Shown piece by piece: positions 28,007 to 44,300 of a stretch of 64,000 bases of DNA. A program made the position numbers and the translations under genes. Source of the DNA: Macrostomum lignano (taxonomy: Eukaryota). Positions within the stretch are counted from its first letter, which is position 1; every line of letters starts with the position of its first letter. The stretch is taken from assembly GCA_002269645.1 (NCBI GenBank), contig NIVC01000859.1, forward strand, positions 310,001 through 374,000. The letters run 5' to 3'. The notes below the pieces were generated by a model. The model searched no databases. It was not told where the DNA came from and was given only the letters and a program-made list of their open reading frames with translations.

Positions 28007-31000
28007 ATGAGCTCATGCTCAGACTGGAGAAATATTCGACTGGCAGCCTTGCTTCTAGCACTGCTGGGTTGCGTCGTGTTTACTGCCTCTGTGGCTGGAT
28101 TCAACTACAGGTGGCATGCGAGTAACACGGATGAAGATGGGAGTCTGCACAACTCAGCTTTCGGTGGCCAAAGTGAGTTAATTGCATCTGGTGCTTGGTA
28201 TGGGTTTGAATGTGGCTCGATAGGAGTACATGTCTAACAAGTGCATGTAGGGGTGTCTTGTCTAACGGGTAGGGGTGTCCGTGTCTAACAGATAGGGGTG
28301 TCCGTGTCTTACAGGTAGGGGTGTCCGTGTCTTACAGGTAGGAGTGTCCGTGTCTTACAGGTAGGGGTGTCCGTGTCTAACAGGTAGGAGTGTCCGTGTC
28401 TTACAGGTAGGGGTGTCCGTGTCTTACAGGTAGGGGTGTCCGTGTCTAACAGGTAGGAGTGTCCGTGTCTTACAGGTAGGGGTGTCCGTGTCTAACAGGT
28501 AGGGGTGTCCGTGTCTTACAGGTAGGGGTGTCCGTGTCTAACAGGTAGGAGTGTCCGTGTCTTACAGGTAGGGGTGTCCGTGTCTAACAGGTAGGAGTGT
28601 CCGTGTCTTACAGGTAGGGGTGTCCGTGTCTTACAGGTAGGGGTGTCCGTGTCTTACAGGTAGGGGTGTCCGTGTCTTACAGGTAGGGGTGTCCGTGTCT
28701 TACAGGTAGGGGTGTCCGTGTCTTACAGGTAGGGGTGTCCGTGTCTTACAGGTAGGGGTGTCCGTGTCTTACAGGTAGGGGTGTCCGTGTCTAACAGGTA
28801 GGAGTGTCCGTGTCTTACAGGTAGGGGTGTCCGTGTCTTACAGGTAGGGGTGTCCGTGTCTAACAGGTAGGGGTGTCCGTGTCTAACTGGTAGGGAACTG
28901 GTAGGGGTGTCCGTATTTAACGAATGCGACTTTCAAGCAACCTGTAAAGCCATCCCAACTCGCCTGGGCTGCAGGTGAAAAATCCGCGGTGCATCCGGGC
29001 AATCCAATCGCCGATCCCATGCAAGCCATCAACAGCTCCGAGAGCTGCACACCGCGCACTGTGGAGGCCTACCCGCCAGACCTGTTCACTTTGGCGCAGA
29101 AGCAGAGCGGCGCCATTCTCATTCACGCTTTTGTCTCGGCTTGGCTGTTTGTTGCTTTGGCGATCGTGTGCGACAATTATTTTTTGGCTTCACTGGAAGT
29201 TGTTTGTGAAAGTGAGTGCTGGCACAGGTGCTCAACTGGGTTGTCACAGGTGCTCAACTGGGTTGTCACAGGTTCTCAACTGGGTTGTCACAGGTGCTCA
29301 ACTGGGTTGTCACATGTGCTCAACTGGGTTGTCACAGGTGCTCAACTGGGTTGTCACAGGTGCTCAACTGGGTTGGCACAGGTGCTCAACTGGGTTGTGC
29401 CAGGTTCTCAACTGGGTTGTCACGGGTGCTCAACTGGGTTTTCACAGGTGCTCAACTTGGTTTTCACAGGTGCTCAACTGGGTTGTCACATGTGCTCAAC
29501 TGGGTTGTCACAGGTGCTCAACTGGGTGTCACAGGTGCTCAACTGGGTTGTCACACGTTCTCAACTGGGTTGTCACATGTTCTCAACTGGGTTGTCACAG
29601 GTGCTCAACTTGGGTGTTACAGGTGTTCAACTGGGGTGTTACTGGTGCTTAGGTACCTGTACCTGAATGTGCCTGCACCTGTCCAACCCTAACCTTGATC
29701 TTGTCAATCACCTGCCATTTCGATCGCAGAGCTTCACCTAAAGCCGGACGTCGCCGGCGCCACCTTCATGGCTGCTGGCAGCTCAGCACCAGAGATGCTG
29801 GCTTCAGTCATTGGCGTCTTCATCGCCCAGAGCGACGTCGGTGTCAGCACCATAGTGGGCAGCGCCATCTTCAACGACCTGATGATTGTCAGTCTGTGCG
29901 GCTTGGCCGCCACCAGCGCTGTCTACCTGTCCTGGTGGCCGCTGTTTCGGGACTGCGGCTTCTACTGCATAAGTGTGGCCGCTATGATTGCTGTGATCTT
30001 CGACGGGATTGTCAACTGGTGAGCTTCATTTTCTTGCATTTTGTTTGTTTGAAAGAACTGCTGCTATTACAGTATGTGCCTGTCTGGCGATTAAAATGAA
30101 TGGGAAGGGGCCATGGCGTTTCATTCACGATATACTCGGAACTTCCCTCCAGAAGCTGCGCCTTGAAACCAAAGAAACTACAGGTAGTTGCTAATAATAA
30201 TATAAAAATAATTGATTACACCTGCCCTAATAAGCAGATGTGCAACCGACAGCTCAGCCGCAGCTATTGCACGGCGCATCTGAAGGCTGCGTACGGCTGT
30301 TCAGTCCAAGGACTGGGGGGGGAGTCGCCACACACCCTCAATTTCCCCAGCTAATGCTGGCACCCATTCTACAGCTGGGTGAACTGAAGCAATGCAGAGT
30401 TAAGTGTCTTGCTCAAGGATACAAATTGTTCTGGTGGGATCGAACCCCCCGACCTTCAAGTCGTGAGTTCGACGCTCTAACCGCTAGGCTAAAACCTCTT
30501 CCACACTATTGTCACACTCTCCCTGTCACACTCCTTGTTACACTCTCCCTGTCACCCTCTTTGTCACACTCTCCCTGTCACACTTCTTGTCACACTCTCC
30601 CTGTCACACTTCTTGTCACACTCCTTGTCATACTCCCTGTCACACTCCTTGTCACACTCCCTGTCACACTCCTTGTCATACTCCCTGTCACACTCCTTGT
30701 CACACTCCCTGTCACACTCCTTGTCATACTCCCTGTCACACTCCTTGTCACACTCCCTGTCACACTCCTTGTCATACTCCCTGTCACACTCCTTGTCATA
30801 CTCTCCCTGTCTTACTTGACTTACTTGACTCAGCTGCAGGGCTGTCCAGGGGGGACACAGCGGGAAGGCGCGAGCGCCCATTCCGCTAATCCCTGAACGG
30901 CCGACGCGTCGCTATGGACGAAGGGTTGGCGCCGCCCAGGGAGGTCCCCCAGTGTCGCCAGCAGCTATAGTGCTCTCTGGAACAGAGAGTTCAGCCCTGC

Positions 31001-41300: not shown

Positions 41301-44300
41301 TCATGTACATAGTGTTGATGTTCTTCAATGATCGCCTGGACAGCGCCATATCAAGCCGGTATCCCAGCCTAGGCACCGGGGCAGCCTACAAGCTCTATGG
41401 GAAAACTGACGCCATCGACAATGAGAGGGAGGTGTTGCTCAGCCAGTCTGGCGAATCGCCGAGAGGATATGCCTGCATTGACTTGCCTCTGGTTTCAGTC
41501 ACTGGTAAATGCAAACATTTTTGCTTTTAGAGGGGGAGAGAGGATCGAGAGAAGAGGGGGAGAGAGGATCGAGAGAAGAGGGGGAGAGAGGATCGAGAGA
41601 AGAGGGTTGAGAGAGGATCGAGAGAAGAGGGGGAGAGAGGATCGAGAGAAGAGGGTTGAGAGAGGATCAAGAGAAGAGGGGGAGAGAGGATCGAGAGAAG
41701 AGGGTTGAGAGAGGATCGAGAGAAGAGGGGGGAGAGAGGATCGAGAGAAGATCGGAGAGGATCGAGAATAGAGGGGGAGAGAGGATCGAGAGAAGATCGG
41801 AGAGGATCGAGAATAGAGGGGGAGAGAGGATCAAGAGAAGTGGGGGAGAGAGGATCGAGAGAAGATCGGAGAGGATCGAGAATAGAGGGGGAGAGAGGAT
41901 CAAGAGAAGAGGGGGAGAGAGGATCAAGAGAAGAGGGGGAGAGAGGATCAAGAGAAGAGGGGGAGAGAGGATCGAAAGAAGAGGGGGAGAGAGGATCAAG
42001 AGAAGAGGGGGAGAGAGGATCAAGAGAAGAGGGGGAGAGAGGATCGAAAGAAGAGGGGGAGAGAGGATCAAGAGAAGATGGGGAGAGAGGATCGAGAGAA
42101 GAGGGGGAGAGAGGATCAAGAGAAGAGGGGGAGAGAGGATCGAGAGAAGATCGGAGAGGATCGAGAGAAGAGGGGGAGAGAGGATCGAGAGAAGAGGGGG
42201 AGAGAGGATCGAGAGAAGAGGGGGAGAGGATCGAGAGAAGAGGGGGAGAGGATCGAGAATAGAGGGGGAGAGAGGATCAAGAGAAGTGGGGGAGAGAGGA
42301 TCGAGAGAAGATCGGAGAGGATCGAGAATAGAGGGGGAGAGAGGATCAAGAGAAGTGGGGGAGAGAGGATCGAGAGAAGATCGGAGAGGATCGAGAATAG
42401 AGGGGGAGAGAGGATCAAGAGAAGAGGGGGAGAGAGGATCAAGAGAAGAGGGGGAGAGAGGATCAAGAGAAGAGGGGGAGAGAGGATCGAAAGAAGAGGG
42501 GGAGAGAGGATCAAGAGAAGAGGGGGAGAGAGGATCAAGAGAAGAGGGGGAGAGAGGATCGAAAGAAGAGGGGGAGAGAGGATCAAGAGAAGAGGGGGAG
42601 AGAGGATCGAGAGAAGAGGGGGAGAGAGGATCAAGAGAAGAGGGGGAGAGAGGATCGAGAGAAGATCGGAGAGGATCGAGAGAAGAGGGGGAGAGAGGAT
42701 CGAGAGAAGAGGGGGAGAGGATCGAGAGAAGAGCTGGGAGAAAATAGGTAATAAAATTGAGAAGAGATCCTGGATTGCTATTGCGAGTTTGAAGTTAATA
42801 ACTACTGGGGTATTTTTGATAAAAGTCCCTCATTCAGAGACGGAAACTTTTTTTCTTTACATTCGTCAAAGCCCCAGAAGAACAGGGTCCAGAATCGCCA
42901 TTTCTGATGCCTAAGGGCTTTCTCCGCCGAACCAGCTGGATCTGCATGCTGCCGTGGACCTGCGCATTCTTTGTCAGCATTCCCGACTGTCGAAGACCGG
43001 GCATTTGGAGGCGCCTGTTCCCGCTGACGCTGGTCTCTAGCGTGGCCTGGATATCCGGGATAAGCTATCTCATGGTGTGGATGGTCTGCGCTGCGGGCGA
43101 CGCACTGGGCATCCCGGACACTGTGATGGGGCTCACTCTGCTGGCCGCCGGCACCTCTGTGCCTGACTGCATGGCCGCTGTCTTTGTCTCTAAAGGAGGT
43201 GTGCAAAAACTTTTGATTGGAGAGTGGGGCTACTACGAGTATTACGAATAGTTATAGACACAAACACACACACACAAGCACACACACTGTCCCTTGAAGG
43301 CTGGGACTCTGAGCAGATATTATTTAACTTCAAACTTAAACCAATTTGCGTGCAAAAAGCCCTATAGGATACTGCATCTGCAACTGGGAGGTATCTACAA
43401 AACCCATTAAACAATGAGACAGTTTGTGACTAGACATGCCAATGCTTTGTCCCTGTAAAGAATTCACTTTAGATTGTAGAACGATAAACGCTTGATAATC
43501 GTACGAGGCAAGCGACTGCAATTTATATTGTAAATATTGAGCACAATACATTTAGTGGATAAGGCTTAGGGGTGGAGAACAAAAGTAGCCAGATTGAAGA
43601 ACGTACATGAGTAAGAGAGTACATTAAGATATTGTAGAAAGGCGCACAGACCGAAACAGGTCAAAACAGGCCGAACCAAAACACCACCCCAAACACTGAA
43701 TACAGTACAAGCTAACATCACTAACAAAAATCAACATAGCCAAGTCACCACAGTCCCCATGCGCCCCAGCTTGTGACCCGATATGGAAATCAATATTTAT
43801 GCTTTAGGGCGCCAAAATAATGCACCATCGGCACCAAAATGAATCAAAATAAATGCTTGCCTGCGGCGCCAAAGTGAGTGCCTGTCATTTCGTGCCGGTC
43901 TGTGGCGCCAAAGTGAGTGCCTGCGGCGCCAAAATGAGTGCCTGCGGCACTAAAAGAATGCCAAATGCTTTGATTCCCAAAACGTTGTAGAGTTTTTTTT
44001 ATTTTGTCCCCCCATATAAAAAATCCATGCCGACATCCCGGTTGGCCAGAATGCAGAGGTGTAGCAAAGGAATTCCAGGGCTTTTCGAGGAAGTTCAGTC
44101 GTCTAATGAACAACGATGCAAATCAATAAATATTGAAACTTCTCGTTCAACTTTGCAGGACTGGGCGATATGGCGGTAAGCAACAGCATTGGCAGCAATG
44201 TGTTCAACATCCTCATCTGCTTAGGCCTGCCCTGGTTAATCAGCACCGTCATTATCGAGCCTGGAAGCTCAGTTATCATCAATTCGTCTGGTCTAACGTA

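Follow-up and report, generated by a model that had tools for sequence, protein, structure and literature searches.

Two neighbouring genes in Macrostomum lignano raise the question of whether a pair of closely related exchangers has come to use different ions. They lie in a stretch of 64,000 nucleotides (assembly GCA_002269645.1, contig NIVC01000859.1, positions 310,001 to 374,000 of the forward strand; hereafter the window, with position 1 its first letter) and both belong to the SLC24 or NCKX family. Members of this family exchange 4 Na+ for 1 Ca2+ plus 1 K+. In human NCKX2 the replacement of Asp575 by Asn removes the K+ dependence and leaves Na+/Ca2+ antiport in place, according to the papers that cite the original work (Kang et al. 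2005, cited in PMC5749117 and PMC4232491). At the equivalent position the upstream gene, P1, encodes Asp457 and the downstream gene, P2, encodes Asn431. This split, proposed in a preliminary description of the window, is confirmed by alignment. Here we show that both residue states are real and that both genes are under purifying selection, and we weigh the plausible proposal that the two proteins have diverged in ion coupling.

The gene pair, its copies and its relatives

A 25.5-kb segment of contig NIVC01000859.1 (328007-353477) matches window positions 18007-43477 with 100% identity. Assembled by hand into complete open reading frames (ORFs), P1 (28007-33477, + strand) and P2 (38361-44493, + strand) each comprise six exons and encode proteins of 551 and 525 amino acids that are 53% identical. 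Every intron is of the GT..AG type, and P1 and P2 share their intron phases (1,1,2,1,1) and intron positions. The P1 model equals GenBank protein PAA75854.1 (BOX15_Mlig021664g3) residue for residue, the P2 model is identical to PAA75855.1 (BOX15_Mlig023664g3), and the P2 start codon coincides with the gene start called in the contig record. The Mlig_3_7 annotation derives from a genome-guided RNA-seq transcriptome assembly from which novel transcripts below 0.5 RPKM (reads per kilobase per million mapped reads) were dropped (PMC5730564). The exact matches therefore give indirect transcript support to the splice junctions. At the end of P2 intron 4 two in-phase AG acceptors are found 6 nt apart (42872 and 42878); the first fits the 525-residue GenBank protein, and the second would drop two residues (Ala-Pro) from the cytoplasmic loop.

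The same assembly contains the entire locus twice more, on contigs NIVC01000620.1 and NIVC01002998.1, consistent with the known redundancy of the DV1 genome (PMC5730564). Based on exon-by-exon mapping, all six exons of both genes occur in each of the three copies with equal lengths, canonical splice sites and open frames. The AAC codon of P2 (Asn431) and its AGSSS arrangement are found in all three copies, as are the P1 codons GAC (Asp457), TGC (Cys427), TCT (Ser423) and GCC (Ala452). Codon 184 of P1 varies: GAC (motif FND) is confined to the window copy and AAC (FNN) is found in the other two. Because P2 and the outgroups have Ile here (ATC in P2), the simplest path is Ile to Asn to Asp, with Asp private to the window copy. 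An older, chimeric M. lignano gene model, A0A1I8IMX5 (P0243, a WormBase-type annotation), also reads GSNVFNIL in the part derived from P2. All codons cited in the preliminary description (those for Asp457, Asn431, residue 184, the SIGTC motif and Ala452; Table 1) are present and in frame, and the sequencing error that it named as a possible refutation is excluded, since the same Asp and Asn codons recur in three diverged copies.

Pairwise comparison of the three copies (Nei-Gojobori method) gave synonymous divergences (dS) of 0.046-0.074 and non-synonymous divergences (dN) of 0.004-0.009, with 17-28 synonymous versus 5-11 non-synonymous differences. The dN/dS ratio is 0.11-0.18 for P1 and 0.08-0.13 for P2. 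Purifying selection has acted on both genes since divergence of the copies, and neither resembles a decaying pseudogene; the residue differences between P1 and P2 therefore sit in working genes. Pseudogene status was rejected for both, given intact ORFs and dN/dS of about 0.1.

The only Pfam domain detected is Na_Ca_ex (PF01699), in two stretches per protein (147 bits for P1, 173 bits for P2; cut-off 24.9). The closest relatives in the database are further NCKX-like proteins of M. lignano itself (58% identity), followed by NCKX3/4/5-like proteins of molluscs, nemerteans, brachiopods, amphioxus and vertebrates (E-values 1e-194 to 1e-121). Solved structures are only distantly related in sequence (NCLX, E = 7e-17; NCX1, 1e-13; NCX_Mj, 1e-12), and sequence and fold searches of the PDB found no experimental NCKX structure. 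An AlphaFold2 model of P2 built from a 78-sequence alignment has a predicted local distance difference test (pLDDT) score of 85 and a predicted template modelling (pTM) score of 0.83. Its membrane core is confident, with low confidence at the N-terminus and loop 278-305 alone. The predicted topology is an N-terminal helix, five transmembrane helices, a loop and five further transmembrane helices, and the nearest solved folds to this ten-helix core are NCLX, NCX_Mj, NCX1, VCX1 and CAX (Foldseek, all with probability 1.00).

A neighbour-joining tree (468 columns, 200 bootstraps) pairs P1 with P2 as sisters with 96% support, within a clade (100%) whose only other members come from Macrostomum or are two unnamed proteins derived from transcripts. 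All other members of this clade and all outgroups carry Asp at the coupling position. As the clade is specific to Macrostomum, the duplication is particular to that lineage, and the Asp of the other members and of the outgroups marks Asn as derived on the branch leading to P2. The genes are thus true paralogs, as had been suggested, and they are neighbours on the same strand; "tandem", the term first used, is too strong, in that two ORFs with WSC and PAN domains lie between them. No orthologue of P2 was found in other species or among transcriptome-derived proteins, the best non-self match being 58-59% identical. The 90%-identity database cluster that contains P2 is represented by an unrelated 103-residue "TMEM107" fragment, which is why P2 itself was not returned by the relative search.

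The ion pocket and the rarity of Asn

Pocket residues were mapped with HMMER alpha-repeat alignments and the NCKX2 numbering of PMC12150658. The twelve coordinating residues of the archaeal NCX_Mj are A47, T50, S51, E54, S77, N81, A206, T209, S210, E213, S236 and D240 (PMC5133943). The corresponding residues in P2 (A, S, S, E, S, N in alpha-1; A, T, S, D, S, N in alpha-2) follow the NCKX pattern at 11 of 12 positions, the sole change relative to NCKX2 being Asn431 for Asp575 (D240 in NCX_Mj). All Ser, Thr and Asn ligands are thus present in P2. P1 (A, S, S, E, S, N; S, T, C, D, S, D) keeps the Asp on which K+ dependence turns and is changed at two other ligand positions, with Ser at that of Ala541 (A206), which coordinates through its backbone, and Cys at that of Ser545 (S210). 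The acidic Ca2+ ligands, Glu188 of the APE motif and Asp548 of the xPD motif, are kept in both proteins.

Published mutants bear on each of these changes. In NCX_Mj the D240N protein is fully active, most NCX proteins have Asn there, and the choice of Asp or Asn mainly shifts the turnover rate (PMC5133943); our alignment shows Asn here in both NCX1 and NCLX. For P1, the relevant result is that human NCKX2 S545C has <1% of wild-type activity, with no measurable transport (PMC12150658). P2 has a further peculiarity in alpha-1, where it reads MAGSSSAPE, the equivalent of A182G plus G183S; FMAAGSSAPE or FMAAGGSAPE is the reading in P1 and almost every relative. In human NCKX2, A182C is non-functional and G183C functional (PMC12150658). 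Some natural relatives have Ala at G183; the AGSSS arrangement was found in no other sequence among the 120 best P2 relatives or the 150 cluster representatives described below.

These results alter the list of ion-site changes first drawn up for P1. The change from FNI to FND is not one of them, as residue 184 aligns with I82 of NCX_Mj and a Met of NCX1, next to the Smid ligand N81 and itself no ligand, and it varies between Asp and Asn. Nor is GSN to ASN, since Ala452 (G570 in NCKX2) adjoins S571 and does not itself coordinate. The change from AAGTS to SIGTC was rightly listed, and it does affect the ligand positions A541 and S545; what went unrecognised is the weight of Ser to Cys at S545, functionally the heaviest change in P1. 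Calling P1 remodelled beside P2 is fair with respect to alpha-2 and overlooks the altered alpha-1 of P2. Among 52 columns that are at least 93% conserved, P1 deviates at five, four of them in alpha-2 (A423S, S427C, S434G and G452A), and P2 at three (F359L, S408A and D431N).

How unusual is Asn at the coupling position? Among the 120 best relatives of P2, 116 have Asp and two, both Haliotis orthologues, have Asn (the other two were misfires of the regular expression). The 120 best relatives of the C-terminal half comprise 119 with Asp and one, from Branchiostoma, with Asn. In 150 representatives of 50%-identity clusters we counted Asp 137 times, Glu six times, Ile once, gaps three times and Asn three times; one of the latter (P0334) is a misalignment onto alpha-1, leaving P0315 and P0354. 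Overall, Asn occurs in about 5 of ~390 relatives, or ~1% of the family, and is recurrent. Chance sampling of the family would be expected to yield it more often. In nematodes, too, a survey of NCKX genes found Asp in nearly every case (PMC4232491). The count of residue states and the phylogeny, which the preliminary description had put forward as a check, thus place Asn in ~1% of relatives and as derived in P2. Its label for P2, a natural D575N-type exchanger, applies in that Asn stands at the residue aligned with Asp575, and not in the sense of uniqueness: the state also arose independently in Haliotis rubra and H. cracherodii ("NCKX4-like", P0070 and P0074), Branchiostoma lanceolatum (P0199) and the two unnamed proteins P0315 and P0354. 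The abalone Asn is an independent origin because the Haliotis proteins fall in the mollusc clade. Our literature search found neither a paper describing a natural Asn-bearing NCKX nor any characterisation of these other proteins.

Like P2, these variants have SNxFN in an otherwise NCKX-like protein; they differ in their independent origin and, in Haliotis and Branchiostoma, in also having alpha-2 changes of the P1 kind. The Haliotis and Branchiostoma proteins carry SAGTS or SIGTS, and those of Haliotis also ASN, like P1 and unlike P2. In addition, the Haliotis proteins read SSAAE instead of SSAPE in alpha-1. In M. lignano, Asn and the SIGT/ASN-type changes are divided between the sisters P2 and P1, a sample far too small for a claim of co-variation.

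Comparison with known exchangers places both proteins in SLC24. They share with it their best sequence relatives, a common tree group, two Na_Ca_ex alpha-repeats, the arrangement of five transmembrane helices, loop and five transmembrane helices, and the motifs GATFMA..SAPE, GSAxFN, GTxxPD and SNxF. P2 differs in its Asn for Asp575 and its shifted alpha-1 glycine, and P1 in Cys at S545, Ser/Ile at A541/A542, Ala at G570 and, following the Asn of alpha-1, Asp or Asn. With NCX (SLC8), NCLX (SLC8B1) and NCX_Mj the likeness is the fold of the CaCA superfamily and, for P2, the N/N arrangement of alpha-1 and alpha-2 seen in NCX1 and NCLX. In contrast, similarity to these proteins is at E = 1e-13 to 1e-17, as against 1e-150 or better for NCKX, and P2 lacks Calx-beta (CBD) domains according to Pfam and has a loop of about 60-90 residues. 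Assignment of P2 to NCX was rejected (Na_Ca_ex as its sole Pfam domain; NCX1 match at 1e-13), as was assignment to NCLX/CCX (NCLX match at 7e-17 with 22% identity; ligands of the NCKX type except Asn). NCLX itself differs from NCX_Mj at 9 of 12 ligands (PMC5133943). Judged by its sequence, P2 is an SLC24 protein by descent, but one that lacks the residue defining K+-dependent function.

Coordinates, neighbouring genes and repeats

Table 1 Exons and pocket codons of P1 and P2, in window coordinates
Feature	Position	Strand	Basis or remark
P1 exon 1 (start codon, signal/TM0 segment)	28007..28172	+	model; PAA75854.1 identity
P1 exon 2	28975..29211	+	AG acceptor, GTGAGT donor, phase 1
P1 exon 3, alpha-1 repeat (FMAAGSSAPE ... 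GSAIFND)	29730..30018	+	aligned with NCX1 and NCX_Mj alpha-1
P1 codon 184 GAC (Asp) in FND	29876..29878	+	AAC (Asn) in other two copies; aligns with NCX_Mj I82
P1 exon 4 (TM5, cytoplasmic loop)	31197..31501	+	gene model
P1 exon 5, alpha-2 first half (LLSIGTCIPD)	32253..32576	+	gene model, alignment
P1 SIGTC (TCT ATT GGC ACT TGC)	32522..32536	+	Ser423 at NCKX2 A541/NCX_Mj A206 position
P1 Cys427 TGC	32534..32536	+	NCKX2 S545/NCX_Mj S210 position
P1 exon 6, alpha-2 second half (IASNVFD) to stop codon	33143..33477	+	gene model
P1 Ala452 GCC in ASN	33175..33177	+	NCKX2 G570 position
P1 codon 457 GAC (Asp) in SNVFD	33190..33192	+	NCKX2 Asp575 equivalent; GAC in 3/3 copies
P2 exon 1 (start codon, signal/TM0 segment)	38361..38478	+	model; PAA75855.1 identity
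P2 exon 2	39117..39389	+	gene model
P2 exon 3, alpha-1 repeat (FMAGSSSAPE ... GSAVFNI)	39891..40179	+	gene model, alignment
P2 AGSSS (GCC GGC AGC AGC TCA)	39932..39946	+	alpha-1 glycine one position earlier than in MAAGSSAPE
P2 exon 4	41269..41504	+	gene model
P2 exon 5, alpha-2 first half (LLAAGTSVPD)	42872..43198	+	gene model; alternative in-phase acceptor 42878
P2 exon 6, alpha-2 second half (IGSNVFN) to stop codon	44159..44493	+	gene model
P2 codon 431 AAC (Asn) in SNVFN	44206..44208	+	NCKX2 Asp575/NCX_Mj D240 position; AAC in 3/3 copies

The space between the paralogs holds two tandem two-exon ORF pairs (35605-36422 and 37047-37809, + strand), each opening with a signal-peptide-like segment and encoding one WSC domain (E = 5e-16 and 1e-13) and one PAN/apple domain; the record of contig NIVC01000859.1 calls no gene there. 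Upstream of P1, at ~8500-24840 (+), is a multi-exon gene for a P4-ATPase (phospholipid flippase) of 1203 amino acids with PhoLip_ATPase_N/C and Cation_ATPase domains and long intronic minisatellite arrays around 16-18.5 kb. Directly downstream of P2 is a coiled-coil gene (45839-47726). P2 bears the tag Mlig023664g3; on the other two contigs, tags g1 and g2 of this transcript cluster belong to the coiled-coil gene. The assembly evidently treated P2 and the gene downstream of it as a single transcriptional unit, which may be a trans-spliced polycistronic precursor, and the joint assembly accounts for the absence of a P2 annotation on those two contigs. The chimeric model A0A1I8IMX5 (1506 amino acids) fuses the P1 N-terminal half with the P2 C-terminal half, the coiled-coil protein encoded downstream and a WSC protein.

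The window is rich in mini- and microsatellites. Within P1, parts of introns 2 and 4 (29223-29649 and 31701-32066) are taken up by the same 22-bp minisatellite, GGTGCTCAACTGGGTTGTCACA, and arrays of 23-bp and 12-bp units occupy 28247-28895 in intron 1 and 30509-30803 in intron 3. P2 has (CTA)~158 in intron 2 (39397-39867) and 51 copies of a purine-rich 24-bp unit in intron 4 (41529-42741). Between the genes, a 20-bp unit is repeated 57 times (34158-35303). A dispersed repeat of ~300 bp, with copies 83% identical, occurs at 33740-34035, at 40708-40989 in P2 intron 3 and at 59627-59835 on the - strand. By eye it looks like a tRNA-derived short interspersed nuclear element (SINE); ARAGORN calls no tRNA in these repeats.

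Readings of the divergence and what they would mean

The explanation that we tentatively favour is a real, transcribed and constrained SLC24 pair, produced by local duplication in the Macrostomum lineage, whose pockets have diverged in a way that would alter K+ coupling in P2 and selectivity or activity in P1. On the P2 side, the acidic residue at the central Smid site has been replaced by Asn, the state of the K+-independent NCX and NCLX exchangers. P2 may then exchange Na+ for Ca2+ in an NCX-like mode, with no K+ co-transport or a much weaker K+ dependence. Loss or weakening of K+ co-transport in P2 is, we infer, the most likely outcome. On the P1 side, Asp is kept, and ligation of Ca2+ and Na+ would be altered by the exchange of a Ser hydroxyl for a Cys thiol, with Ser for Ala541 in addition. 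Because Cys replaces a Ser that human NCKX2 needs and Ala541 is also changed, the prediction for P1 is Ca2+ transport that is altered or reduced, or a changed cation selectivity.

Several points weigh against this explanation. P2 is annotated on one of the three contigs that bear the locus, and no expression levels or tissue data for Mlig021664 and Mlig023664 were found in the papers and supplements searched. At the conserved columns, 9% of family representatives deviate as much as P1 or more, and 19% as much as P2 or more, so that neither is an extreme outlier. Relative-rate tests for faster evolution of P1 were mixed, two of the four outgroups giving significance. The D575N result was obtained in human NCKX2, and context could matter because P2 is of the NCKX3/4/5-like branch. 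Since A182C is non-functional in NCKX2 and the alpha-1 repeat of P2 is unusual, P2 could be impaired rather than re-coupled. The Cys of P1 may be tolerated in its own context, as one other family representative has Cys at that position.

It is possible, if rather unlikely, that P2 is still a K+-dependent or K+-modulated exchanger, with Asn tolerated in the NCKX3/4/5-like background, the other ligands holding K+ and only affinity or turnover being tuned. The otherwise canonical NCKX pocket of P2, the ordinary purifying selection that it shares with its relatives, the turnover effect in NCX_Mj and the restriction of the Asp575 evidence to NCKX2 are all consistent with this. However, the same single substitution abolishes K+ dependence in NCKX2, as reported in PMC5749117 and PMC4232491, and the K+-independent CaCA exchangers with solved structures aligned here (NCX1 and NCLX) all have Asn. 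Furthermore, Asp is kept in ~95% of the family, which argues that it matters for family function.

We consider it improbable that one or both proteins transport very little or nothing and are kept for another role or are in early decay, P1 through its S545C equivalent and P2 through the shifted alpha-1 glycine. The <1% activity of S545C and A182C in human NCKX2 (PMC12150658), the clustering of P1 deviations in alpha-2, the Asp/Asn variation of P1 residue 184 among the copies and the lack of any mention of the gene identifiers in the papers and supplements searched would fit such a loss. Against it stand the intact ORFs and splice sites of both genes in all three copies, the excess of synonymous over non-synonymous differences (dN/dS about 0.1), the retained acidic Ca2+ ligands (E of APE, D of IPD or VPD) and gene models that derive from an RNA-seq-guided assembly. 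That the Asp/Asn difference is an artefact of sequencing, assembly or mis-splicing is essentially refuted: the data come from one assembly of one inbred line, with a repeat-rich genome and many intronic minisatellites, but the codons are identical in three contigs diverged at dS of about 0.05, the older independent model also reads SNVFN and the models match the GenBank proteins exactly.

Within the favoured reading, in which P1 and P2 have diverged in ion coupling and selectivity, the closest known counterparts of P2 are the engineered human NCKX2 mutants D575N and D575C (Kang et al. 2005, via the papers citing it). P2 has the same Asn substitution, with all other pocket ligands unchanged. 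It differs in that its change occurs naturally, is fixed in all three copies and is subject to purifying selection, in that its backbone is NCKX3/4/5-like with an extra alpha-1 change, and in being known from sequence alone. A bolder version, which we regard as doubtful, is that P2 is a natural reversion to K+-independent, NCX-like coupling (probably 3Na+:1Ca2+), that P1 was retuned by Ser to Cys, and that the Asp to Asn switch was reused in abalone, amphioxus and other lineages.

GenBank and UniProt already list P1 and P2, uncharacterised and labelled "hypothetical" or "Na_Ca_ex domain-containing"; the new element is that two sister genes, both maintained by selection, are recognised as differing at the coupling residue. 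By using the K+ gradient, NCKX proteins can pull Ca2+ lower than NCX proteins, and the idea that a single Asp controls this use rests on engineered human NCKX2. P1 and P2 offer a matched natural pair with which to ask whether the switch works in other backbones and what must change alongside it. As M. lignano is amenable to transgenesis and RNA interference, an in vivo test is feasible. Should the prediction of K+ independence fail, Asp575 would be insufficient as a sequence marker of K+ dependence in genome annotation. If the bolder version is true, coupling stoichiometry in the NCKX family would be an evolutionarily labile trait set by one residue.

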